From Pocillopora damicornis (lineage: Eukaryota), in contig NW_020843829.1 in NCBI RefSeq assembly GCF_003704095.1, forward strand, positions 558,001 through 622,000: a DNA stretch of 64,000 nucleotides. Reading direction: 5' to 3'. The translations under genes and the position numbers were made by a program. Under the pieces are notes generated by a model, which saw nothing but the letters and a program-made list of their open reading frames with translations, made no database searches and was not told the DNA's origin. This document shows positions 19,157 through 37,962 of the stretch, piece after piece. Position 1 is the stretch's first letter, and the number at the start of each line of letters is the position of its first letter.

Positions 19157-20134
19157 TTATGGTATGTCTGCAACGTGTGAACGTGGTGGGAACATGAATG
19201 CAAGTGCTTCCTTTTCCACTGCTGTGATCTCTGGATGCCATAGGTCTACCATGAGAACAACTCTTTCACTGTCCACGCCTTTGTGCCACGCTTCATGAAG
19301 AAAAGAATCGTCAAACAGCAAAAGTTCTCTTTCATTCCACATTCTTTCTTGGCCGTTCACACACAAGCGACAATTGTTCGGAACATAGAGAGGCAAATGA
19401 CACCTTATCCTGCAATTTGTTGGGCCGTAGTGAGCAGTTATGTGTGTTCCAGCTCGAACAACTGAAAACAATGCATTACCAAATGAGCAAGCTTCTATAA
19501 TCAATTCTACGGATTCGATGATCTCTACGCTTAGCGGGCACTTCCTGCAGTTGTTAACAACTCTTTCCCCTTGATTTATCAAGTGATATACTAACCAGTC
19601 CCCTTCGGGTGTTGAATTCTTTACCCATCCCTCATCACTTGCGTTAAATCGGATTTGGTTGAATTCTGACCGTATCATTTCAAAGTTCTCGGAGCAGACC
19701 AAAGTTGTTAGTTGATCTGAGAGGAAGTCATGCCAAGGTCTGCCAGACAATCCGTATAGATAAAACACTGTGGGTTTTTGTGCAGATGAGAAATTATTCC
19801 TCTTCTTTTGTGTCCTGTTGTATTCGATTGCTTTGTACAGGCGATCAAGTTCACCCTTGTCCGATTTTACCCGTGCAAACTCGTCCAGTTTTGTCAACAA
19901 TAGTTCAGCTGTTTCCGACGGCGATTTTGTTAACTTGTGAGAGCATCGGAGGCATTCCGAAGATCGACAAAAATTTGTATCAACTAAGTTTGATATATGG
20001 CTATCCCTTTCGTAACTGAAAAATTTGGTCAAAATTGTTGCAGTAAATAGCACAGCTACAGCTACCAGTCCTTTAAAGATAAAATTGAATACAAAGGAAG
20101 AGATTTGCCAAAGATGCTCTTCTTCGTCCGCCAT
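19157..20134 (-). CDS. ASPHD2: Aspartate beta-hydroxylase domain-containing protein (Fe(II)/2OG dioxygenase fold), single coding exon
   Basis: 325-aa ORF with N-terminal hydrophobic helix, CRSSECLRC, HYGPTNCRIRCHLPL, FDDSFLHEAWH, RVVLMVDLWHP, typical of ASPHD1/2. Confidence 0.9.
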   Translation of the reverse strand: MADEEEHLWQISSFVFNFIFKGLVAVAVLFTATILTKFFSYERDSHISNLVDTNFCRSSECLRCSHKLTKSPSETAELLLTKLDEFARVKSDKGELDRLYKAIEYNRTQKKRNNFSSAQKPTVFYLYGLSGRPWHDFLSDQLTTLVCSENFEMIRSEFNQIRFNASDEGWVKNSTPEGDWLVYHLINQGERVVNNCRKCPLSVEIIESVELIIEACSFGNALFSVVRAGTHITAHYGPTNCRIRCHLPLYVPNNCRLCVNGQERMWNERELLLFDDSFLHEAWHKGVDSERVVLMVDLWHPEITAVEKEALAFMFPPRSHVADIP

Positions 20135-20683
20135 GTTTGTTTTGAAAGAAGTATAGTACCAGTCTCTTCGCTGAAATCAATTGACCAACGCATTTACGCA
20201 TTTGGCAAGTTAACATCACAACTCTTGCGATCTGTGGTTCCACATGTTTAAGATTTATTTCGATGGACCTTAAAATAAATGTGTGAGACCTTCCCTATTT
20301 TTTATAATCGCTCTGTAACAAAAGATTCCTAATCGCAAGTATTTATCTTGCGCTCAACTGCTCAGTTTCTCCGTTTCTTTAACGGCGAGCGATTGGAAAG
20401 GCAGATCCAACCATTGAATTGGGAGGCCACTTATTGTCATCTCAAACTATGCGGTTAAGACTCGAAGTAAGTGCTCAGAGAAATATTCTCCAGTTGCAGC
20501 TGCCATAACCATCACAAAATGTTATTACCTGTAACTCCCTAATTAGCAAAAAGCGCGCGCATTTAGGGTCATTTATTACGTCGTTAATAAGAAGCGAAAT
20601 CTCCAATGATTTAGAGGTTGTCACCATGACATATTATCAACAATTTGTTTGACGGCGAGCTGAATTCGAGTTACTTTAAACCC
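20135..20683. promoter_or_regulatory. Probable bidirectional promoter ASPHD / FBXL
   Basis: Head-to-head start codons ~550 bp apart. Confidence 0.5.
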
Positions 20684-22063
20684 ATGGATGAAGGTCATAC
20701 GTCTTTTGTGCTCCATGATATGCCAGATTCCATAATATTACAGATATTCTGTCAATTTACGATCAAAGAACGCCTTTTGTTGCGACGAGTATGTTGGAGG
20801 TGGCACCACCTTTTGAAGGACTACAGCGTGTGGAGGAGTATCGATCTTAGTGAGGACTGCTCCCTATCGAGTAAGGTCAATAAAACCATCCTGGAAGGTT
20901 GGATCACAGCCTGGGGTAAGACTATTCAGCATATGGATGTTAGCGACTGCAGGTGGCTTACAGATCTCGTTATTCAAAAAGTCGCGCAAAATTGTGCGGA
21001 TCTCCGTGACTTAAACGTGGAAGGCTGCTTCCAAGTATCCGACACAGGAATGAACGCGATAGCCTCAAACTGCAAGCGCTTAAAGAAGCTAAACGTTTTT
21101 CTTAGCGGGGTGTCGGAACAAGGCTTTGAGAGATTTTTAAAGCAGTGCCCAAACTTAGAGGATGTTAAGTTGGGGAGTAGAGGAAATTGCAATCGTATGA
21201 TAGTGTCTGTGTGTAGTAGTGTGAAAGATTTAAAAGCAATCTCCATTCATGATGTTATCCCGTTTGACGAGGGCGAACCAGTGGTAGATGACCTTTCGCT
21301 GTGGAGGCTATGCACTTGTTTCCCAGGGTTGACAGCCATTGATCTTACGTGGTGTTGTTTCATCACTGATGATGCTTTATTTGCACTTCCGTTTTGCTGT
21401 CCAAATCTCAAGTCTCTCACTATTCGGGAATGTCATCAAATTTCAGACCGCGGAGTTCGTGCCGTGTTCCAAATTTGCCATTTAACCTTGTCAAAAGTAC
21501 ACCTGGAACGTCTTTACAGCATCACAGACGTTCTTACTCTCTCACCGGAAGACCTTAAACCTTTTCCTAATCTGTCATACCTTAAACTGATCGACACATC
21601 TATTTCCGACATCGGCGTCGCGAAGATTGCCGAGAAAAGCCCGAACTTACAAACTCTCATTGTTGGAGAGCATTGTTTTAATCCATACAACATCCATGGT
21701 GGTTTTATTCCCACCATCGCAGAAACTTGTCAAAAGTTGAGACGATTCAAATTATATTCAGGAAGAATGAAGGACAATTATTTGATTGCTATTGGCGAAA
21801 ATATACCTTTTATAACCGACCTCTATCTCGGCGATTGTCGTGACTGTACATCTCAAGGGTTAGAGAGGATAATTTTGCGCTGCCGCTGGTTGCAAATATT
21901 GCACATTCTAAACTGTTCCCATGTAACCAATAAGACACTGGTTCTTATCTCGCGGAACTTGACGGATCTCAGAGAATTAGAGATTCTAAATTGTAGGAGT
22001 ATCACCACATTAGATGTTCTAGGACTCAAACAAAAGTTACCAAGGTGCGACGTCCGGTATTAA
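20684..22063 (+). CDS. F-box/leucine-rich-repeat protein (FBXL family), single coding exon
   Basis: F-box LHDMPDSIILQIFCQFTIKERLLLRRVCWRWHHLLKDYSVWRSIDLS followed by Cys-containing LRRs (LRDLNVEGCFQVSD, LTAIDLTWCCFITD, LKSLTIRECHQISD). First in-frame ATG at 20684. Confidence 0.92.
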   Translation: MDEGHTSFVLHDMPDSIILQIFCQFTIKERLLLRRVCWRWHHLLKDYSVWRSIDLSEDCSLSSKVNKTILEGWITAWGKTIQHMDVSDCRWLTDLVIQKVAQNCADLRDLNVEGCFQVSDTGMNAIASNCKRLKKLNVFLSGVSEQGFERFLKQCPNLEDVKLGSRGNCNRMIVSVCSSVKDLKAISIHDVIPFDEGEPVVDDLSLWRLCTCFPGLTAIDLTWCCFITDDALFALPFCCPNLKSLTIRECHQISDRGVRAVFQICHLTLSKVHLERLYSITDVLTLSPEDLKPFPNLSYLKLIDTSISDIGVAKIAEKSPNLQTLIVGEHCFNPYNIHGGFIPTIAETCQKLRRFKLYSGRMKDNYLIAIGENIPFITDLYLGDCRDCTSQGLERIILRCRWLQILHILNCSHVTNKTLVLISRNLTDLRELEILNCRSITTLDVLGLKQKLPRCDVRY

Positions 22064-23033: not shown

Positions 23034-24896
23034 TCAAAGCTTTGAAAGATAAATCTGTGGCCTTTTAAAAACACGATCCACCATAGCACTGGCTTCAATA
23101 GCACAGCCCCATGAGAAAGTCACACCTGAGCCCCCATGTCCATAGTTGTGCAGAAGAGAAGGACACACAGGATCCCACTCCAGACGAACGTTACCATGAC
23201 GAGCAGGACGCAGGCCTACCAACACTTCCTCTACATCATCGTCTCCATAGTTACGGAGGGGTGGATAGAACTCCTTTACTTTCTCAAACATCTTTCTGAT
23301 TGGTGGATAATCAAGTGTCNNNNNNNNNNNNNNNNNNNNNNNNNNNNNNNNNNNNNNNNNNNNNNNNNNNNNNNNNNNNNNNNNNNNNNNNNNNNNNNNN
23401 NNNNNNNNNNNNNNNNNNNAAAAAAAAATATTGAGAATAGTGAGAGAATGTTTGCTATGATCTAACTTACCAGTTTCATCGATGAGTTTGGCGTCATGGC
23501 GAAATCCTGGCAAATGATTGAGCTCATTCATCTTTTCTAACTGTTGAGGCAGATTATTCACCTAAAGAAAGAGAGAGAAAGAGTAAGATCGAGAGAACTA
23601 TTCAGATTTTCAGAGTCTAATAGTAACAATAATAACAAGACGATACGACGGATAAGAATATGCGGCAAATGTGGAGTTACCTTGTCCTTAAAGTAGAATA
23701 TAGATTGTCTGAGGAAAGCTCCAGTTTCCTTCGAGTTCATAGCCAACTCCATGAACTTGGCATAGCCATCCATGCACCAAGCCTTGGCTCTCTCCAGTGA
23801 CTTTTCATTTGTGTGTCGCCCACAGACCGCTGGAGGCCACTCCCATAGAGCGCCAGCGATCTCAGAAGTGATGCGTTTACCAGAGGAGACAGGGGAGGCG
23901 TACTCCTTTGCTAAAACTGTCACTTTGTACCTATGAACGATGAATGATTTAACAACATTAAAGAACATTTTCATTGCATCTTTATTTAAAAAAAGCCGCC
24001 TAAAGAATCGTCCCTATTTACTGTCTAAGAGTGGACAGGTTTAAAACCAAATTCTGTTTGTATAAAATGGGGATTTACTTAATTTTTTTTCCACTATGAG
24101 AATTCTTTGCAAGAAATGGAATGGCAGTATTTCGTAATCGGATTTGAACGCTGGCTTTTTTCCACTTGAAAATTAACTGTAGCCGTATTCACCAGCCTGT
24201 TTTGAGATCTTAGAAATCATCCTAAATAGCTGTGCGAATTGCACAAAGCCAGTAGCATTTATAAATATTTTTCTTTTTCTGAGCTCTGTGCTTCATGTTG
24301 TCAGTGATGGCTGCAGATTTTTGCAAATTTTGTCGCGTTTTTGCCGAAAAATCAGGAACCAAGCTTTCGTAACATGAAAGCCGCAAAAGTTCGCGGAAAT
24401 GTCGCATATGCCTCGCATGATTGGGCTTTCACTTTCCGCTTTTGTCGCTGATCTTGTATAATCTTTTAATAGCCGGAAAAAATTTAGTCTAATTTTCAAC
24501 TTACCCTTTATTCAACAACTGCAGAGCACTGGTCATTCCAACAACTCCGCCTCCAATAATTAACACACGAGGAGCTTTCTGAGAGTTCTAGAATCCAAGG
24601 GAGAAAATTCAGAAAATAGTTTCTTTCTTTATCTCCGTCAGGGCGGGATGTCTCGGTGGTTGATGTACATTTTCAATGTAAAAAGTATTAATCTGATATG
24701 TTCTCCTAAATTTTCTTCATTTTTATCGAGTATTGACTAAGAACAATCATTTACCCTAATACAAAACAGTTGCTCGAAAAAATCAGATCACATACAGGTA
24801 ATTCATCTTTTTTCCCGTAAATTCGTGCTCATATGTTAGAATCCTTACCTTGAGTTTCCTTGTGTTGTCTAAAGTTCTTCCAAACTGGAGAGCCAT
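23034..24896 (-). CDS. D-amino-acid-oxidase-family flavoenzyme, copy A (middle exons lost in the N gap 23320-23419)
   Basis: Exons 24849-24896 (MALQFGRTLDNTRKLK), 24505-24587 (APRVLIIGGGVVGMTSAL, FAD-binding GxGxxG), ~23681-23930 (ITSEIAGALWEWPPAVCGRHT), ~23471-23561, then 23034-23319 (VGLRPARHGNVRLE, HNYGHGGSGVTFSWGCA, ends SKL). Confidence 0.85.
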
Positions 24897-25009
24897 TGTC
24901 TTAAAGGTTGCTCCTAGAAGTTAAGATTACTTCTCAGGTATGTCTTCAGTGCTTTCTGTTTTCTAGAGTCTTCAAGCTAATGTTGTCCCTTTTGCCGACA
25001 TTTTTCCCA

Positions 25010-25165
25010 TTTTATAGCCATTTCAAACAAGGTGATATTAAAAATTCGGAAACAGGACAATTGTTCTTCCTTAATGACTGACGTCAATGGTTCATGGGGA
25101 ATATTTGATGGGCAACATGTACTGAACTGACGCAAACTAACTCACGCGACAGTCACGTTCACTAA
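25010..25165 (-). promoter_or_regulatory. Promoter of DAO copy A: TATA box plus palindromic CRE
   Basis: CTATAAAA (minus strand, ~25010-25017) and TGACGTCA (25079-25086); same elements in same order upstream of copy B. Confidence 0.55.
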
Positions 25166-25410
25166 GGAAAAATTACCTCTATCGTTTTTTCGCGCTCGTT
25201 AACGTCTGGGCGCAATTTTAAGTCGCTTTAGATGACAGATTCTTCTGATCAAATCATAGATGATGTACATAACGTGTTTGTATTTGCGAAATTCATGTTA
25301 GCCAAAATCGGCGAATCCACACGTATTCCGTCAAAGCATGTCTTGGACAGTTTGACAATTAATCCCCCCTTGATGGATGATAAAATGTTTATCTCTGTAT
25401 CCGATGCATT

Positions 25411-27284
25411 ATTTCCTCTCACAAACTGCTAAGCAAACGCAGTGGAAGAACGTGACTGACCGACTGGCCGGTTTTTCCTAATTGCCACGTCCATGGCAAC
25501 AGACGTGACAGTCACACAGCACAGAGGTCACGGATTGCAAGTCACGTAATCAAGTATTACCTACAACGTCAGAAACGAGTTCTTTTGCTTAAAATTTTTG
25601 TTTTTCATTCCACTTTATACAGCCTTAGACCCTTTAAAAGAAGGAAAATACCGAACAAGATCACATCGAGAGTTCAAACTATTCAAAGCTTTCAAGTTGA
25701 AGTTGGTGACTTGAGCCAAAAGCAGAACAAATTGATTTAGTATTCGTGATTGAGTGATAAATTTCCGGCTGATTGACGGCAAAACGTGTTCATAGATTTT
25801 TCCTCCGGCAATCTATCGTTCGCAAAAAGGTACACATTGCGTATTTTTTTTTCTACCCTAAAAAAAGAAAATTAACAGTCCGGATATAGAAGGAAACTTT
25901 ATTCACTCTTTGTTGTTGTCCTTTCAAAAAATCTTTAATTATTTTGACATCTTTACATACTATTGTCACCGGGTGACGTGAGTGTTATCACAGCTTAACT
26001 TGCCTCATATAAATGACAAAGCAGTATGATGTTTTTATTTTTTTCTGTCTCTAAGAGATTGGATAAATTCCTCCATCGCTATATGTGACGTTTAATATTC
26101 TGATTGTAAGAGAAATAGCTCATTGGAACATCCTGATATTAATTAAGTTNNNNNNNNNNNNNNNNNNNNNNNNNNNNNNNNNNNNNNNNNNNNNNNNNNN
26201 NNNNNNNNNNNNNNNNNNNNNNNNNNNNNNNNNNNNNNNNNNNNNNNNNCAAAAGCGGATAATTGTTATATTGTAAGTGGCTCCGTGTTCGGGCGTGAAA
26301 ATGCTTTAAACAAGTAGCATTTGGAAAGATTTGAAACTACGTCAGAGTCTTAACTTAACAGCAAAGACAAATATTCTGACTCTTTTAGCTGGACCAACCC
26401 GGGCCTCAATTGGAATTACCTAAAAAGCTTTTCGGTCCCTGAATTAAGTTACGGCTTTTTCAAATTGTTAAAAAAATTGTGTTCTAAGCTATTCGCTACT
26501 CCATGCTGGGAGCTTCACAGCTACCCAACTCGGGGCCATTTGTTAAGGGAAAGAGTTGACGAGACGCATGCAAAAATAAAATAGATCAGAATGCCAACTT
26601 AATTAATATCAGGATGTTCCAATGAGCTATTTCTCTTACAATCAGAATACTAAACGTCACATATAGCGACTGAGGAATTTATTCGATCTTTTAGAAACTT
26701 GATGATCAAAACATCAAACTGCCTTTTCATTTGTATGAGGCGAGTTTAGTTGTGATAACACTCACGTCACTCGGTGACAATGGTAAAGATGTCAAAATAA
26801 TTTAAGATTTTTTGAAAGGACAACAATAAAGAGTGAATGAAGTTTCCTTGTATATCCGAACTGTTAATTTTCTTTTATTAAGGTAGGTAAAAAAAAAAAG
26901 GTACACGCAACGTGTACCTTTTTGCGAAAGATAGATTGCCGGAGGAAAAATCTATGAACACGTTTTGCCGTCAATCAGCCGGAAATTTATCACTCAATCA
27001 CGAATACTAAATCAATTTGTTCTGCTTTTGGCTCAAGTCACTAACTTCAACTTAAAAGCTTTGAAAAGTTTGAACTCTCGACGTGATCTTGTTCGGTACT
27101 TTCCTTCTTTTAAAGGGTCTAAGGCTGTATAAAGTGGAATGAAAAACAAAAATTTTAAGCAAAAGAACTCGTTTCTGACACTATAAGTAATACTTGATTA
27201 CGTGACTTGCAATCCGTGACCTATGTGCTGTGTATATCAGTCACGTTCTTCCACTGCGTTTGCTTAGAAGTTTGTGAGAGGAAG
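25411..27284. repeat. ~700-bp inverted repeat pair (25411-26149 / 26596-27284) around an N gap
   Basis: E.g. AGTCACGTAATCAAGTATTAC (25540) vs GTAATACTTGATTACGTGACT (~27187); roughly 90% identity by eye. Confidence 0.9.
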
Positions 27285-28041
27285 TACATTTCAGCCCGCC
27301 AAACTCTCCATTTAAGTCCACAAAGTGCTCTGTAATGCTCGACAAAGTGATAATAGGTCCCCATTTTGATCGTTACATTATTCTTTTAAATAATTCAGAA
27401 TTTGATGTTTCATCATGACCAAACCCTCCTCCAGGCGCGAAGCGGTGATGTATATCCACCGCTTCTTAGCTGTTTTCGTGAACACTAAGATAGTGAAATA
27501 ATAGGACACCAAAAGATGATTTCAACTAATTTATTCCTGCAACGATTGAAATATTTTCAGGTGCAAATTCCGTGCGGATCGTCGGAGTATCAGAAGCCAA
27601 TCAAAGCCCTCCACGCTATCCACTGTTTATCGATAAATATATCTAAAATTTAAATATTCCCATAATCTGCATGCTAAGTTATGTTTGAAATTGTGCTCAG
27701 GAGTTACATGTTGGTCAATTCCGACAGTTCGAGTCGTAATGGAACTCATTGGGGTCTGCTCCGGCCATGCGGCAAAATAAAGAAATAAATAATTTACAAA
27801 AAATAATCTTTATTCAATATTCGCTTCGCACACTATTTCATACAGTATTATACAAATTTCGTTTGAATAATAATATAACTTTTGTTTTGTTTTTTTTTTT
27901 ATAAATAAAATGTACAATGCACAAGTAACATTCTCAATTCATTCAATAGCCTTCGATCACACAGCTGATTCAAGACCTGTCTCCTACAAGGAGTTCAAAA
28001 TGAGCTCATAAATTACGAAAACAGGAAAAGGTGAAAAAAGG

Positions 28042-30097
28042 TTATAGCTTTGAAAGGTAAATCTGTGGTCTTTTAAAAACACGATCCACCATAGCACTGG
28101 CTTCAATAGCACAGCCCCATGAGAAAGTCACACCCGAGCCCCCATGTCCATAGTTGTGCAGAAGAGAAGGACACACAGGATCCCACTCCAGACGAACGTT
28201 ACCATGACGAGCAGGACGCAGGCCTACCAAAACTTCTTCTACATCATCGTCTCCATAGTTACGAAGAGGTGGGTAGAACTCCTTTACTTTCTCAAACATC
28301 TTTCTGATTGGTGGATAATCAAGTGTCAGATCTCTGTCCCACTGATGAGGTTGTACCATTCCACCCAGCCACAATTTGTCGTCACCTCTCGGTAGAATGA
28401 ACACGAAGCTTTGTCCTTCTTTATCTGACTCGTCGAACTCCTTGATTATAGAGATGCACATGGAGTGATTGAGTTTTGGCATCAAACTTCCGTCGTTTCT
28501 CACTTTAAGAATCACTCCTGGAATGCAAAATGGAAAGAGAGATCGGTAATCAAGGCCAACTCAATTTGTTACAATTGGCACACATAGGATGCCCAACATA
28601 TATGATTTAGTAGGACATACACAAGTTATTTACCTCTTAGGGGATAGACATCTTCATCTCCTGCCAGTTCTTTGGCGCTAAGTCCAGAGCAGTTGAAGAT
28701 CAGCTGAGCTTTGTATTTCTTTTTCAAGTCTTCTGCCTGATCTCTCAACAACCCGTGAATCTCATCGTGTACAAAGCGACAGCCTTTGTCACGACACTGT
28801 TTGTAAAGCCACTGCATGTAGGTGACTGTGTCAACCATGGGAGCCATATGTTGATATGCGTCCACAACACCAGTGTCTGTGTTCACACCTGAAGGAGAAG
28901 AAATTAGCAATATTCCTTATTTATTTAGCTGTCAATTGGAGAGCTTCGTAGTTAGCGAAGCGTTCAAACGGGAATCCTTTTTCTCAGTGTGGACGCTTTT
29001 CAGCGAAAATTATTCATTGTTCAGCAAAATATTGAAAAGGGGAAAGCCCCTTTTTTTTTCTTTTTTACTATGATCAAACTTACCAGTTTCTTCGATGAGT
29101 TTGGCGTCATGACGGAATCCTGGCAAATGATTCAGTTCGTTCATCTTTTCCAACTGTTGAGGAAGATTGTTCACCTGAAGAAAGAAAGAGCAAGAGTTTG
29201 GTGTTAAATTGAAAACTTTTTTGACATTTGAGAGATAAATTCAATACTACAGATGACTTACAGGACACAGGACAAAACGATTACCCCGATAAAATGTTCT
29301 GCAAATGAAGAATTACCTTGTCTTTAAAGTAGAAGATAGATTGTCTGAGGAAAGCTCCAGTTTCCTTCGAGTTCATAGCCAACTCCATGAACTTGGCATA
29401 GCCATCCATGCACCAAACCTTGGCTCTCTCCAGTGACTTTTCGTTTGTGTGTCGCCCACAGACCGCTGGAGGCCACTCCCACAGAGCGCCAGCGATCTCA
29501 GAAGTGATACGTTTACCGGAGGAGACTGGGGAGGCGTACTCCTTCGCTAAGACTGTCACTTTGTACCTAAAACAAGGGTGATATTTGAGGGACAAATGAG
29601 ACTGGGCACCAACAAATGATCTAAGACGTCAAAACCTTTATGTTTCTCTCGATTTTTTTTCACTTCTTTCCAAACTTTTTTTTATATATAGAAAAATAAG
29701 TCAGTGACAAACTTACCCTTTATTCAACAACTGTAAAGCACTGGTCATTCCAACAACTCCGCCACCAATAATCAATACACGAGGAGCTTTCTGAGCGTTC
29801 TAGGATGAAACGAAAAAAGTATGTTCAGTTCCTCTATGTGTAAGTTGTTCCTTTCTTTCATAAATTTTTCCCTCACTATATTTCAAGTTGTAATTTGAGT
29901 TTTTCCAAGTCGGTATTAAGCTGTCTCTCAGTTTTCGCTATCTTGTCAGTGTCGGAAACTTTACTGAGAACCAACAATCACAAATGACACTGAAAGCTTG
30001 ATTAAAATATTTTCCATTGTGAGTTAACAATATTAAGAATTCTTACTTTTAGTTTTTTGGAGGTGTCCAAGGTTGTTCCAAACTGTAAAACAGGCAT
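28042..30097 (-). CDS. D-amino-acid-oxidase-family flavoenzyme, copy B; complete, 6 coding exons, ~400 aa, PTS1 SKL
   Basis: Exons 30047-30097, 29717-29799, 29317-29566, 29084-29174, 28634-28888, 28042-28517; GT-AG and in frame; motifs GGGVVG, FNCSGLSAKEL, YPLRG, GLRP, HNYGHGGSG, C-terminal IYLSKL. Confidence 0.92.
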
Positions 30098-30114
30098 GTT
30101 TTCGGTGGAAATTT

Positions 30115-30188
30115 AGTCTTCAAGCCCTTATAGTTCTGTTCCTTGAGTCTTCAAGCCCTTATAGTTCTGTTGCGTGAGTCTTCAAGCT
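30115..30188. repeat. 31-bp tandem duplication in the presumed 5' UTR of DAO copy B
   Basis: AGTCTTCAAGCCCTTATAGTTCTGTT twice plus a third AGTCTTCAAGC; copy A has a single GAGTCTTCAAGCT. Confidence 0.85.
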
Positions 30189-30218
30189 GATCTGATTCAC
30201 TTGCAAATGTATTCTCCG

Positions 30219-30365
30219 TTTTATAGACATGTCACATAAGGGGGCATCGAAAAATTCGGAAATAGAACAATCCTTTCTCTATGAACGCGTGACGTCAATA
30301 TGCATGACTGGGCAACATGTGCTGACGCAGACAAACTCATATAATAGGTTAAGTCACGTTTACTG
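30219..30365 (-). promoter_or_regulatory. Promoter of DAO copy B: TATA box plus palindromic CRE
   Basis: CTATAAAA (minus, 30219-30226), TGACGTCA (30290-30297), GGGCAACATGT, CTGACGCA and AGTCACGTT blocks shared with copy A. Confidence 0.55.
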
Positions 30366-32314
30366 TACACACATTAAAAAAAGTTGGAAAAAAAGGTCAA
30401 AAAGTACATGTATTGATGTAAGCTGTTTCTTGTGGGAAAGAGGTTCGGTGTCTATCGGAGGTATTTTGAATTAAGTTGTATATAAAGCTGTTGCTGTTGT
30501 TTTTTCTTTTTAGGGGGGGGAGGGGAGAGAGGGGACTGTCTGACAGCTAAAATCTTCAAAGCCGCAGGTATCTAATACGTGACTTTTTCGCAAAGAAGCC
30601 TTAGGCAACTACCGACACATTAACGACTCAGTCTCTCTGGATTGGGGACGAAATTATCATCTATATATATTCTTTCGATATGTTACTTTCACTCAAAAAT
30701 TCTCAGAAAACGTTAATTTGAGAACGTGACTTACTGACAGACCCGTCATTTCCACGTGGACTCCTCGAAGACGCTATTCGCCCATAGCAACAGACTTGTT
30801 GTCACACAATACACCAGTCACATATTTATGCATTACGCATGACATTAGGCACCTAGCACGAACGTTGCGTGATAACCTGGAGCAAAGGCTGTCCGGCTGC
30901 GACAGCTTTCCGGGCAATGAGTTTTTAAGTATTCCTGTGTTGGGGAAAGATTTGGAGGGGCGTAATGAAAATGCCTATCAAGTTTGAGGCAAATTTGATC
31001 GAAGATGGCTCGCAATCAAATCGTTAGATACAGCTCGTTTTGCCTCAATGAATCTGGCCCATATCGATCAAAAGTAAACGTGTCGTCAAACTGCTAATTT
31101 AAATCATCGGAAGTAAACCCACCCAACAAGAGGCGGTGAGTCAAACGACCTTAAATTGACATATCAGGTATACTCGACTCAGAGCNNNNNNNNNNNNNNN
31201 NNNNNNNNNNNNNNNNNNNNNNNNNNNNNNNNNNNNNNNNNNNNNNNNNNNNNNNNNNNNNNNNNNNNNNNNNNNNNNNNNNNNNCAGATTCATTGAGGC
31301 AAAACAAGCTATATCGAACGGTTTGATTGCGAGCCATCGTAAATCAAATTTGCCTCAAACTTGATAGGCATTTTGATTACGTCCCTCAAAAACTTTTCCT
31401 AACACAGGAATACTGAAAACTCATTGTCCGGAAAGCTGTCGCAGCCGAACAGNNNNNNNNNNNNNNNNNNNNNNNNNNNNNNNNNNNNNNNNNNNNNNNN
31501 NNNNNNNNNNNNNNNNNNNNNNNNNNNNNNNNNNNNNNNNNNNNNNNNNNNNNNNNNNNNNNNNNNNNNNNNNNNNNNNNNNNNNNNNNNNNNNNNNNNN
31601 NNNNNNNNNNNNNNNNNNNNNNNNNNNNNNNNNNNNNNNNNNNNNNNNNNNNNNNNNNNNNNNNNNNNNNNNNNNNNNNNNNNNNNNNNNNNNNNNNNNN
31701 NNNNNNNNNNNNNNNNNNNNNNNNNNNNNNNNNNNNNNNNNNNNNNNNNNNNNNNNNNNNNNNNNNNNNNNNNNNNNNNNNNNNNNNNNNNNNNNNNNNN
31801 NNNNNNNNNNNNNNNNNNNNNNNNNNNNNNNNNNNNNNNNNNNNNNNNNNNNNNNNNNNNNNNNNNNNNNNNNNNNNNNNNNNNNNNNNNNNNNNNNNNA
31901 CAACAACAGCTTTATATATGACTTGATTCAAAATACCTCCGATAGACACTGAACCTCTCTCCCACAAGAAACAGCGTACATCAATACATGTACTTGTTGA
32001 TCCTTTTTTTCAATTTTTTTAAAATATGTGTACAGTAAACGTGACCTTTGGCTATTGTATGAGTTTGTCTGCGTAGGTACATGTTGTCTAGTCATGGTAG
32101 ATTCCTCAGGAATATTGGCGTCACGCGTTAATTTTTTTAATTCACGCGAATTTTTCGATGCGAATTTTTCAAGGGCTAACGTGTTTTTCTATTAAAAAAA
32201 AAAAGTTTAGAGAGAAGCGAAGAAAAATAAGGAGAAACATAAAGGTTTTGACGTTATTAGATCATTTGTTGGTGCCCAGTCTTATTTTTTTCATAAATAT
32301 CCCCCTCGTTTTAG

Positions 32315-32512
32315 GTACAAAGTGACAGTTTTAGCAAAGGAGTACGCCTCCCCAGTCTCCTCCGGTAAACGTATCACTTCTGAGATCGCTTGCGCTCTGT
32401 GGGAGTGGCCTCCAGCGGTCTGTGGGCGACACACAAACGAAAAGTCACTGGATAGAGCCAAGGTTTGGTGCATGGATGGCTATGCCAAGTTCATGGAGTT
32501 CGCTATGAACTC
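32315..32512 (+). pseudogene. DAO-family copy C: isolated, truncated exon-3 fragment from an inverted duplicate of copy B
   Basis: YKVTVLAKEYASPVSSGKRITSEIACALWEWPPAVCG...AMNS then breaks into non-coding sequence; upstream intron and promoter pieces match copy B in reverse complement; exons 1-2 and 4-6 absent. Confidence 0.85.
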
Positions 32513-35500
32513 AACGCTGAAAATATTTCAATCGTTGCAGGAATAAATGAGTTGAAATCATCTTTTAGTGTCCTATTATTTCATCTAAGTGTTCACCATA
32601 ACAGCCAACAAGCGGTGGATATACATCACCGCTTTGCGCCTCGGTTAATGTATCCCCCACAAGTCACCTTCCCTTCGGTGAACAGTAGTTAGTTAGGTAT
32701 ATCAAGTGGAGGGTTTGGTCATGATGAAACATCAAATTCTGAATTATTTAAAAGAATTATGTAACGATCAAAATGGGGACTTATTAGCACTTTGTCGGGC
32801 ATTGTAGAGCACTTTGAGGACTTAAATGGAGTTTTTGGCGGGCTGAAATGTATTTGATGCCGCTTGCACGCTCGTGTGATTGTTCAGATCGTTTTGTTGT
32901 CATTTTTTTAAATGTTTATTTTATCAATGCCCTCCAAAGTACTAAAATGACTCTGATTCGGGCCCAAAATATATTTATGCCCGCGAACATAAACTCTATT
33001 AAAATGTTTTGTTTCTTAAGTTAATTATATTGACGTGATTAACTTACACACATCTGTGACTTTACAATAAAAACTGGAAAAATTCACTGGTTTTTGTTCA
33101 CTTTCTAGCAACTTCCGAAAGAACACACGGAACAAATTTATACACCACCATTAAACTGACTTCTGTTCATAACCCGCACCAACTCTTGTTTTATCTTCGT
33201 TGGCATACAATGTTAAAAGAAAAATATTTCGTAATATTACATTTTTCCGCTTATGTGCTTTTATTAATGGAACTTGCACTTACGAAGATCACGTTCAAAC
33301 TGTAATGTTTTCATTCAAATACGTAACAAGAAAATGACTAAGGGGAATTTTTCCGTAGGAGCACGTCATATACCGAAAATGATGAGATACAACGGAATTG
33401 ATTGATCAATAGGACGAAAAAATATGTAATAAAATACATCATGATAGGCAATACATCCCATGGTATCCACAAAATATTTTTCCTGACCGCCTTCGAATGA
33501 GTTAAATGAGCGTTCTGTTTGATTCAGTTCGAACAGAAGTCGTGTTCCTGCTCATATGATTGGAATTTTTTCCGAGGTTTCCTAGAAACAACGGCTGACA
33601 ATCTTTGAGAGGTGGAGCTCAATATAACCACCCAGGATAAAACGGAAATACTTATTTATAAGTATTTTAAAATTTTACGAAGTTTTGTTTTAATGTGAGC
33701 CAAGAAAATTTCATCACTTGGTCTTGTCTGGCTTTGGGTCGTTCCTCTGTGCGTGATCATGATGGTTCAAAAAATTTATTTTGACAAGAGCCAGTTTCTG
33801 ATTTATCATGCTATATCACCCTTTCTGACGCCCGAAATCAAGAGGAAAGAAATTTTCACCTCTTCCGCCTCTTTTCCTTGTTCTCTTTCATTGTCAAAAT
33901 TTACCATTGCGAAAACAGGAAAATTACGCTAAATGCAACATTTTAAAGCTAAGGAAGTTGAAAGCCATAAAACAACCTTGAAAACTTGTCCTTGATCCCT
34001 TTGGAAATAAAGAGTATATTAGGGCCCACGTTTTGAGGATTTTACCTTAGCGTAAGACGGACCTGAGGGAAAATGTATAAACATTAAAACTTTCTGCAAA
34101 GCTACCAAACCAAATCGAAACATTTTGGCTATTCAGTCCTCGGTTAGCTTAATCGTGCTTTGAACAACGCAGCCCAGTTTGGAACCTGCGTCAACTCAAA
34201 AAATGTCGAGAAGGTGAAGTGATACCAGCGGTCATCTTTGATACTGCGCCAAATAATTAAAAATACACTACTGAACGTGTCTGAGATCTGCATGACATGA
34301 AACACGGGGAGTGAGTTTATAATGTTCAACTCCGTAGTTTTACCAGAATATTCCCCTGTCGTATTTAGTTTAGGCACTCACGGAGCTTTTTGAATGGTGT
34401 GTGCCTAATACCATAACGCATTTTCTTTAGAATGGCTGACAAGTTTTTTTTCGCGCTGAAAGCAAAATTGAGGTGAATCGTTTGGCCGCTCTAAGTAATT
34501 GAGAGAGGTGAGAACAGCCTGAAAACACAGAAAAAATTCGAATTATAAAATGATTTTGCATTACCGAAGAGATATAACTGTGAGTATTAGGTTGAATGAG
34601 CCAATTTAGACATATTCTGCGAAAACATTACTTTCAAATCCACTCGGCCTTGAAATCTCTGTCATTAAATCTTATTCAAGGATGATTTGATTTTCTTTTC
34701 GACGAAAATACCGATAATCACAAAATTGCTCAGTTAGTATTTTCTCAAATTCAATAAATTTTATAATTTGTTTTGCATCACTGACGTGCAGCTCACTTCA
34801 GGATCAGAAGGGGGCAACAGTTGAAGAGAGTCGGACTCAATTGACATGCAGCTGTTTTCTTGAAAACTCATTTTTTAGATTTCTACTCTTACCGTAAGAA
34901 TCTTTTATTGTATCTTTAGTAACGTTTATTTTTAGTTACCTTTGTACTTTACCGTGCATTGATTTAAAAATGATATAGCTCGACCTGGTGAACCGTTAAT
35001 CAAACAGTCAGTTCTCAGATCTCAGCCAGACACGTAAACGGAAAATTGTGATACGATAGGTCACGCTTGGTTAAACAGGAGAGCGAAACGGTGAATGACT
35101 TCCTTGTTTTGATTTTTCTGGGTAAGTTTAAAACGCATAATTTTCTCACTTTGATGTTGACAAGTGATCAAAATAAATGATTGCAAAGCTGTATCTTTTA
35201 AAGACATGCTTGACTGAAGCTGCCGCTCAAGAAATCAAAGCGGATAGGTTACGGTTGATCTTATCCATGCTTAATCGCACGCAAGAACGTGACTTGACAT
35301 TGATATTGAAATTAAAAGAAGAAAAAAACCCTTTCGATAGGTAAGGGTCTTTGGCATTTAGGAATCTTTAGGCACTGCATACATGGCTATATACAAAACA
35401 TGTAGATCTGCACGTGTTTTTTCGGCCCTAGAAATATAAATGCGAATTCTGAGCATGTTCGGGTTCATCTGTTAATTGCTATTGGTTATGAACAAGTCAA

Positions 35501-35556
35501 TAAGTACTCGACGCTGAAGAATATTGGAGTGGAGGGCTTTTAAACAACTATTGAGA

Positions 35557-37962
35557 ATGCCGATACAGTTTCCACAGTCAAAAACCTCAGGTTCTCGATC
35601 CACTAAGGTAAAACTGGCTTTTGCCATTTCAGAAATTTCTGTACTCGTCTTAATTCTTAGGTTATAAAGTGAGTGTCACACTTTTTCGTCAACTTGAGCG
35701 CTGTGCACATAAAAACTTGTACTCCTATTACCTTCATGACGTACAACACATAAACGGAAAATGAAAATTCATTTTTAAAAATCAAACAATTTTATCTATA
35801 CAGAAAAATGAAACAAAACGAGTACTCCTGGAAACATTTCTCCATGATCGCCATAATTTACGTCTCTCTGTTAACAAGTATCAAATTATTCAAAGGATAG
35901 ATGAAAACATCATTTTATTTTCATCAACACCCATCTTAATGTTTCCGTCTCTTCTGCGGAATTGATTTTCCATCTAGCATTTTTCCTGTGTGAATTTTGC
36001 TTTAACTAAAGTCCTGTCTTGTACAGAGGTCTTCGCGCGCTCCACGCGTGTTGGTGATTGGGGGCGGAGTCGTAGGTATGACGTCAGCATTACAGCTTCT
36101 GCAGAAAGGTTGCAAGGTAACAGTTTTAGCCAAAGAGTTCGCCTCCCCAGTCTCCTCTGGTAAACGCATCACTTCTGAGATCGCTGGCGCTTTATGGGAG
36201 TGGCCTCCAGCGGTCTGTGGGCGACATACAAATGAAGAGTCACTGGAGAGAGCCAAGGTTTGGTGCATGGACAGCTATGCCAAATTCATGGAGTTGGCTA
36301 TGAACTCAAAGGAAACTGGAGCTTTCCTCAGACAATCTATCTTCTACTTTAAGGACAAGGTAAATGCCCAGCCTGTTAGTTGCATTGCTTGCGTGTAAAC
36401 TTGTAAACGAGCCATTTGGAAGTGAAGAGGCCTGATAAAGACTTTTCTTGCATGAGCTTGAATGGGAATTTGGTGCCCGCTTACCTAAGGGAGGAGTGGA
36501 GAGGGGAAGGGGGGGGAGGGAGGGGGTACCGAGTCCGATAAATTTTAAGATAGACTGAACTTTTTTTTTTAATTTCTAATGGGCCTCTGATCTCTTTTTT
36601 TCTCTAAAAATCGAAGGTTAAAGATCTTCCTCAACAGTTGGAAAAGATGAATGAACTGAACCATTTGCCAGGATTCCGTCATGACGCCAAACTCATCGAA
36701 GAAACTGGTACAGTTGCAACCTTTTCACAATAAACTTAAGAATTTTAACAGTAGAATGTGAATAGAATGTGCTCGCGAGTTCTCTTCACCTTCGGCTCAT
36801 TCCTATCTCTTTGGTATTTGCCTTCCCCGTCACATAACAAATTAACCACAATTTGATTGATACATAATTGTTGATTCGAATCGCCGGTAGCTTCTAGTGA
36901 CCCAAAACTGAGCGAATCAACCATCTCCGTCCTAAGGCCGAAGATTATTTCCTGTCTTAGAGCGCTTTTACAGACTGAAAAATGCGGAAGTTCCCTTTAA
37001 CTCCCCTTCCATTATTGAAAGGTGCAATGTGTCTTAAACGTTTGTGTGACTTACCAAATGACCTGCCATTGATAACGTTTTCTTTCCATTTAGCTGTAAA
37101 CACAGACACTGGTGTTGTGGACGCATATCAACATATGGCTCCCATGGTTGACACAGTCACCTACATGCAGTGGCTTTACAAACAGTGTCGTGACAAAGGC
37201 TGTCGCTTTGTACACGATGAGATTCACGGATTGTTGAGAGATCAGGCTGAAGACTTGAAAAAGAAATACAAAGCTCAGCTGATCTTCAACTGCTCTGGAC
37301 TCAACGCCAAAGAACTGGCAGGAGATGAAGATGTCTATCCTCTGAGAGGTAAATAAAACTCGTGAAACGTGCAAGCTGAGATCAGTTCAGTTGTGATATG
37401 TTTAACAGAATTACGTCTCTTCCTTGATTGTGAAAAGAAAGGTGTTGAATCCGTATCCTTGTCCTTCAAAATCTCTCTCATTGCAGGGGTGATTCTTAAA
37501 GTGAGGAACGACGGAAGTTTAATGCCAAAACTCAATCACTCCATGTGCATATCTATAATCAAGGAGTTCGATGAGTCAGATAAAGAAGGACAAAGCTTCG
37601 TGTTCATTTTGCCTCGAGGTGACGACAAACTATGGCTGGGTGGAATGGTACAACCTCACCAGTGGGACAGAGATCTAACGCTCAATTATCCACCTATCAG
37701 AAAGATGTTTGAGAAAGTAAAGGAGTTCTATCCACCCCTTCGTAACTACGGAGACGATGATGTAGAGGAAGTGTTGGTAGGCCTGCGTCCTGCTCGCCAT
37801 GGCAACGTTCGTCTGGAGTGGGATCCTGTGTGTCCTTCTCTTCTGCACAACTATGGACATGGGGGCTCGGGTGTGACTTTCTCATGGGGCTGTGCTATTG
37901 AAGCCAGTGCTATGGTGGATCGTGTTCTTAAAAGGCCACAGATTTTGTATTCAAAACTTTGA
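35557..37962 (+). CDS. D-amino-acid-oxidase-family flavoenzyme, copy D; complete, 5 coding exons, PTS1 SKL
   Basis: Exons 35557-35607 (MPIQFPQSKTSGSRSTK), 36027-36359, 36617-36707, 37094-37348, 37487-37962 (ends ILYSKL); TATAAA at ~35436. Confidence 0.92.

Follow-up and report, generated by a model that had tools for sequence, protein, structure and literature searches.

What is the origin of a cluster of coral genes whose products look microbial? The cluster lies at positions 23034-37962 of a 64,000-nucleotide stretch of the Pocillopora damicornis genome (contig NW_020843829.1, positions 558,001 to 622,000; the whole stretch is referred to here as the window), and it encodes oxidases of the D-amino-acid oxidase (DAO) family. 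The original prediction, made from the sequence alone, proposed that corals had perhaps acquired these genes from microbes. Our analysis gives a different answer: the cluster probably arose by lineage-specific duplication, both tandem and inverted, of an old animal gene for a peroxisomal oxidase, dependent on flavin adenine dinucleotide (FAD) and with the DAO fold. What is new here is a further member of a known enzyme family, from an unstudied subfamily with a patchy distribution in animals.

Six-frame open reading frames (ORFs), BLASTN self-comparison and direct reading of the sequence identified four related units, comprising genes A, B and D and a relic, C. The original prediction had likewise described three genes, one made incomplete by a gap, and one fragment, and its account of the products as flavoproteins of about 400 amino acids with GxGxxG, GLRP and HNYGHGGSG motifs, a C-terminal SKL and four to five spliceosomal introns was correct. 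Copy B (minus strand, 30097-28042) is complete, with six exons and five GT-AG introns, and copy D (plus strand, 35557-37962) has five exons and four introns; both encode 401 amino acids ending in SKL, and spliced transcripts match. Of copy A (minus strand, 24896-23034), exons 1-4 and the final 285 bases of exon 6 are visible, open and with intact splice sites, and it also ends in SKL. The proposed local amplification is thus confirmed, and A, B and D carry a type 1 peroxisomal targeting signal (PTS1).

Searches were carried out using single exons first and then P0170, a protein encoded on a public transcript contig described below, as a full-length stand-in; models of A, B and D with joined exons served only for local alignment, dN/dS and trees. 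GxGxxG, ITSEIAGALWEWPPAVCGRHT, GLRPAR and HNYGHGGSG were all found in the cluster sequence, and every sizeable exon matches the Pfam family DAO. P0170 scores 122.6 bits against PF01266 (DAO), for which the cut-off is 27.9, with an E-value of 3.5e-35 over profile positions 1-350 of 353. In NCBIfam, no model reaches its cut-off and no family name is assigned; the best is the glycine oxidase ThiO, at 67 bits against a cut-off of 250.8. ThiO is from the same superfamily and is a second-tier structural match, but it is only 15-16% identical to the coral protein and falls far under the model cut-off, and membership of this group was rejected.

The proteins are distinguished by the signature AGALWEWPPAVCG, which occurs where canonical DAO and D-aspartate oxidase (DDO) read AAGLWQPY. 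In an alignment of 51 subfamily sequences, W74 and P77 of the signature region are invariant, and E75, P78, C81, G82 and H84 are at least 90% conserved; the sequence IIGGGVVGMT, present in A, B and D, is also invariant. The cluster proteins carry the signature and are placed within a clade that has full support in the tree described below. We conclude that the cluster belongs to a distinct, biochemically uncharacterised subfamily, with the signature AGALWEWPPAVCG.H, which occurs widely among bacteria and fungi.

The structure was predicted with AlphaFold2 using the 51-sequence alignment, giving a mean predicted local distance difference test score (pLDDT) of 89. The best matches to the model in the PDB are the DAO and DDO structures from Rasamsonia, human and pig, with Foldseek E-values of about 1e-28 and 21-26% identity, and sequence searches of the PDB concur. 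Canonical DAO (EC 1.4.3.3; human, pig, Rhodotorula and Rasamsonia) and DDO belong to the same Pfam family and have the same fold, with a template modelling score of up to 0.85 on the target. The features in common are the GxGxxG start, the arginine that binds the carboxylate (GLRPAR in the coral protein, GFRPVR in the canonical enzymes), HNYGHGG and the C-terminal PTS1. In contrast, the coral protein is about 50 residues longer than the canonical enzymes.

The active site is partly conserved. Arg283 of human DAO, which binds the substrate alpha-carboxylate, aligns with Arg344 of GLRPAR, and this residue is kept in at least 90% of the 51 subfamily members. The active-site tyrosines are not retained: according to an HMMER alignment, as opposed to a superposed structure, Phe283 lies opposite Tyr228 of human DAO and a glutamine lies opposite the lid residue Tyr224. 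The lid loop over the active site is longer than in DAO and has low pLDDT. Because the pocket is altered, specificity for D-amino acids cannot be assumed.

The protein is inferred to be a FAD-dependent, H2O2-forming oxidase of an alpha-amino acid that would act in peroxisomes. FAD bound at the GxGxxG Rossmann start would oxidise the C-N bond of the amino acid, while Arg344 (equivalent to Arg283 of human DAO) would hold the substrate carboxylate. Molecular oxygen would then re-oxidise the reduced flavin, forming H2O2 inside the peroxisome, to which the SKL sequence is expected to direct the protein. The original prediction further suggested that such an oxidase could play a part at a host-microbe interface. 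A PTS1-type C-terminus occurs across the animal members (SKL in A, B, D, the crinoid and Actinia; AKL or ARL in two Nematostella proteins), and the cluster proteins are probably directed to the peroxisome.

Relatives of the cluster proteins are numerous. In an exhaustive HMMER search, exon 6 as query found 2314 proteins at E <=0.001, only 17 of them at E <=1e-30. The closest full-length relatives are proteins from the stony corals Stylophora, Desmophyllum and Montipora, at 84-91% identity; a paralogue is found in a further stony coral, Oculina. Sea anemones are represented by Nematostella, with two genes, and by Actinia. The crinoid Anneissia has an orthologue that is 49% identical and ends in SKL. 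Among the matches listed, the animal members were found only in hexacorals (stony corals and sea anemones) and this one crinoid. The fungal relatives span chytrids, Mucoromycota and Dikarya, and further eukaryotic members occur in the liverwort Marchantia and the oomycete Pythium. Bacterial relatives, 45-51% identical, number in the thousands and come from many phyla. The nearest clades in the tree are bacterial and fungal proteins annotated as FAD-dependent oxidoreductase or amino acid oxidase (Priestia, the Bacillus cereus group, Calothrix and Ktedonobacteraceae; Apophysomyces, Xylaria and Mycena), which share the signature motif with the coral protein and are 37-51% identical to it over the full length. 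Unlike the coral protein, the bacterial members lack both introns and a PTS1, and their length is 360-380 amino acids. We note that the word-based protein searches covered the best 120 of thousands of matches, and missed the Actinia and Oculina sequences of the query profile. Cluster look-ups of ten further high-scoring fragments gave only metagenome or Logan entries, and the Protein Atlas returned only fungal and cyanobacterial clusters, which we treat as a lead and not as a test.

Five relatives (P0254, P0037, P0031, P0023 and P0220) are 700-800 amino acids long, with the oxidase domain fused to another module. The partner is a beta-eliminating lyase (PF01212) in P0254 and an ATP-grasp domain in P0037, and these fused modules may hint at the substrate class.

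A tree of 72 sequences was calculated with IQ-TREE using LG+C20+F+G4 by posterior mean site frequency (PMSF), with support given as ultrafast bootstrap / Shimodaira-Hasegawa-like approximate likelihood ratio test (SH-aLRT). It was rooted on the clade that holds the tunicate Clavelina DDO and a homologue from the mollusc Nucella. The ingroup is separated from canonical DAO and DDO at 100/100, so that the cluster proteins do not group with the canonical animal enzymes. Within it, the animals form a single clade at 100/100, in which the crinoid lies outside the cnidarians at 89/70. Marchantia joins the fungi at 99/95, and all the sampled eukaryotes come together at 97/91. The core bacterial sister clade has a support of 95/83, and more divergent bacteria, for example a planctomycete, branch outside. 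When Pythium and eight more bacteria were added, the eukaryote clade still had an SH-aLRT support of 97, and Pythium was placed beside chytrid and mucoromycete sequences. Two parts of the original prediction agree with this tree: the proteins are non-canonical oxidases, forming a clade apart from animal DAO and DDO and being 21-26% identical to the solved enzymes, and they are of a microbial-looking type, in the sense that this type is abundant in bacteria and fungi. The nesting among microbial sequences that had been expected of a transferred gene was not found, in that the animals do not fall within any bacterial lineage.

The Pythium protein (P0400) is 63% identical to a mucoromycete protein and branches among the early fungi. 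Because of this placement, and because the Marchantia (L009) and Apophysomyces (L010) genes are intronless, the sequences suggest transfers from fungus to plant and from fungus to oomycete within the subfamily.

The age of the animal gene was assessed from its introns. For the crinoid, Nematostella and Actinia genes, exon chains were rebuilt from genomic loci, and the introns were placed on one protein alignment. Seven intron positions, with identical phase, are common to Nematostella and Actinia; five of the seven are also present in Anneissia, and coral copy B has four of the seven. All five genes compared have one position in common (phase 1, before GVILKV). Introns common to a deuterostome and to cnidarians imply an intron-bearing gene in the cnidarian-bilaterian ancestor; judged in this way, the gene arose no later than the split of these two lineages and already contained introns at that time.

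The features of the cluster are as follows.

30047..30097, minus strand: copy B exon 1, with ATG, 17 codons
29717..29799, minus strand: copy B exon 2, with GxGxxG
29317..29566, minus strand: copy B exon 3
29084..29174, minus strand: copy B exon 4
28634..28888, minus strand: copy B exon 5
28042..28517, minus strand: copy B exon 6, including the stop
35557..35607, plus strand: copy D exon 1, with ATG, 17 codons; the joint from 35607 to 36027 is found in contigs from RNA runs
36027..36359, plus strand: copy D exon 2, equivalent to fused exons 2 and 3 of A and B (intron lost)
36617..36707, plus strand: copy D exon 3
37094..37348, plus strand: copy D exon 4
37487..37962, plus strand: copy D exon 5, including the stop; ends YSKL
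24849..24896, minus strand: copy A exon 1, with ATG, 16 codons, donor GTAAGG
24505..24587, minus strand: copy A exon 2, with the GxGxxG FAD-binding start
23681..23930, minus strand: copy A exon 3, with the AGALWEWPPAVCG signature
23471..23561, minus strand: copy A exon 4
23320..23419: assembly gap within copy A
23034..23318, minus strand: copy A exon 6, last 285 bases and stop, with GLRPAR, HNYGHGGSG and SKL
32176..32512, plus strand: fragment C, intron 2 and most of exon 3 of a B-like copy, inverted; the exon part starts at about 32312

Coding sequence is not continuous across the gap in copy A: its upper flank is intron 4, while the lower flank begins 190 bases into exon 6. The part of copy B that has no counterpart at this position amounts to about 756 bases, running from the remainder of intron 4 through exon 5 and intron 5 into exon 6. 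Either the gap conceals exon 5 and the beginning of exon 6, or a deletion has occurred there. A 175-residue ORF spanning the gap is an artefact, because the flanks, intron 4 on one side and the interior of exon 6 on the other, are not continuous coding sequence. The three other gaps (26150-26249, 31186-31285 and 31453-31899) are intergenic and interrupt no exon of B or D. Fragment C has lost exons 1-2 by deletion and has no exons 4-6, and it is therefore a relic; it is preceded by a piece of the upstream region of B. The intron that splits the coding sequence between LLNKG and YKV in A and B is missing from copy D.

The flanking genes are animal or eukaryotic, and encode F-box/leucine-rich repeat (LRR), Asp/Asn beta-hydroxylase and dynein heavy chain proteins. 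Two long single-exon ORFs stand next to each other upstream of the cluster, one for an Asp/Asn beta-hydroxylase-domain protein of 325 amino acids (19157-20134, minus strand) and one for an F-box/LRR protein of 472 amino acids (20645-22063, plus strand). Between A and B there is an inverted repeat (25514-26149 against 27233-26596, 91% identical) with the gap at 26150-26249 exactly in its centre; the region 25514-27233 could be a genuine palindrome or a pair of transposons, or could reflect a fault of the assembly. Directly upstream of the copy B start codon (about 30115-30190, minus strand) there are about 2.4 repeats of a unit of about 31 bases.

Public RNA-type sequence data contain transcripts of the cluster. 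The contig that encodes P0170 (L011, 1459 bases, from an RNA-type run) has an uninterrupted ORF of 401 amino acids and is 98.9% identical in nucleotide sequence to spliced copy B, and P0170 itself is 99.5% identical to the copy B model by local alignment. All four splice joints of copy D, each GT..AG, are present in contigs of four RNA-type runs from three studies. Two polyA RNA runs have contigs that extend unspliced through copy D intron 1 (35534-36179), which is spliced in other runs; the unspliced contigs could come from intron retention, from an internal start or from carried-over DNA.

B and D differ by a synonymous divergence (dS) of 0.31-0.37, and A and B by one of 0.23, with dN/dS of 0.02-0.16. 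On these values, A, B and D are not haplotypes but old paralogues maintained by purifying selection. In the 72-sequence tree, the Stylophora protein joins B and leaves D outside, and the duplication that produced B and D is therefore apparently older than the split from Stylophora. The local history is one of ordinary gene duplication, with one intron loss (in D) and one decayed copy (C).

We can now weigh the possible origins of the cluster. The one that we prefer is duplication of an old animal gene, for which the most likely course is descent from a gene shared with fungi and then loss in most other animals; inheritance from an early opisthokont or eukaryote gene is favoured because the best tree joins the animals to the fungi (97/91). 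Several observations weigh against it, however. The coral and crinoid proteins are closer to bacterial proteins (48-51% identity) than to fungal ones (37-46%). Their distribution in animals is very patchy, although the word-based searches were not exhaustive and do not show absence from other phyla. An approximately unbiased (AU) test in which the animals were joined to the core bacteria instead of the fungi did not reject that arrangement (delta lnL 13.8, p = 0.20), and the monophyly of the eukaryotes is not statistically secure. The proposed enzyme activity must likewise be set against the phenylalanine in place of Tyr228 and the longer, low-confidence lid loop, as well as the gene neighbourhoods of five bacterial loci, which are variable, have no conserved partner and give no clue to the substrate beyond a major facilitator superfamily (MFS) transporter. 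This transporter is downstream in two of the five loci; one locus has RidA and a GntR/aminotransferase-type regulator nearby, one has a catalase-like gene, and one lies within a probable secondary-metabolite cluster. The identities, the AU test and the patchy distribution would also fit a very ancient transfer, in which an early animal took up a bacterial gene of this subfamily ahead of the cnidarian-bilaterian split and separately from the fungi, and this gene gained introns and a PTS1 and disappeared from most animals. The position of the whole eukaryote clade inside bacterial diversity points the same way, as do the other eukaryotic members that look transferred, namely the intronless Marchantia gene that groups with fungi and the Pythium protein that resembles a mucoromycete one. 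Nevertheless, the best maximum-likelihood tree, obtained under a site-heterogeneous model, places animals with fungi, and continues to do so with the oomycete and more bacteria included; moreover, no bacterial lineage is the specific sister of the animals. We therefore regard so ancient a transfer as unlikely, while recognising the number of observations that it would accommodate. A more elaborate proposal, which we consider improbable, is that the genes represent a third, bacterial-type animal lineage of DAO-family peroxisomal oxidases, gained from bacteria before the cnidarian-bilaterian split and surviving only in hexacorals and crinoids. Its altered pocket (Phe for Tyr228, a near-invariant Glu in WEWPP, and a longer lid) would then lead to substrates unlike those of DAO and DDO, such as basic or bacterial-derived D-amino acids, and it, in place of the canonical enzyme, could be the Acropora 'D-amino acid oxidase' discussed below.

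The strong form of the original prediction, a recent transfer from a microbe to corals followed by intron gain and amplification, draws on the motif-level likeness to bacterial and fungal proteins. It does not hold, since orthologues occur in sea anemones and a crinoid, the animals are monophyletic at 100/100, and between four and seven intron positions and phases are common across these animals; the intron positions common to anemones, crinoid and coral refute a coral-specific transfer, and we give it almost no credence. It is equally hard to believe that the cluster is an artefact, either contaminating microbial DNA or haplotype copies misassembled as paralogues, even with four assembly gaps in the region and an inverted repeat around one of them. 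The spliceosomal introns, the spliced transcripts and eukaryotic flanking genes such as that for dynein heavy chain all speak against contamination, as had been argued originally, and misassembled haplotypes do not fit with dS values of 0.23-0.37, far above allelic levels, with the different intron set of copy D, or with the grouping of Stylophora with B to the exclusion of D.

The same coral genome contains other DAO-family genes. One (C2478:258426-262612; loci L004, L021 and L024) is a divergent paralogue from the same subfamily, with 35-39% identity to the cluster copies; its C-terminus is AKL, and it has HNYGHYRWG in place of their HNYGHGGSG. It is 64-75% identical per exon to the Oculina protein, and this Oculina counterpart groups with the Nematostella genes in the tree. 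Another (C4099:7828-21336; loci L015 and L017) is a gene of the canonical DAO/DDO type, with N- and C-terminal exons that are 53-55% identical to a mollusc homologue. Both types of enzyme are therefore present in this coral.

Literature searches on the signature motif and on transfer of DAO to corals found no description of this animal clade, and no paper was found on any member of the bacterial and fungal subfamily. A survey of transfers of enzymes of D-amino-acid metabolism describes DAO-family events only in fungi and oomycetes (PMC5169069). In Acropora, a 'D-amino acid oxidase' has been reported as the hub of an immune module and as a gene induced by deoxygenation (PMC7580945, PMC9622859), and these reports do not separate the present branch from the canonical enzyme. 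The coexistence of two unrelated-looking types in one coral bears both on how the Acropora data are read and on which protein is chosen for assay. More generally, a microbial look, whether by motif or by best matches, is compatible with an old animal gene that has been retained in few lineages. The analysis thus draws attention to a large, unstudied branch of the DAO family, which in corals is duplicated, conserved, expressed and, as far as its targeting signals indicate, probably peroxisomal.

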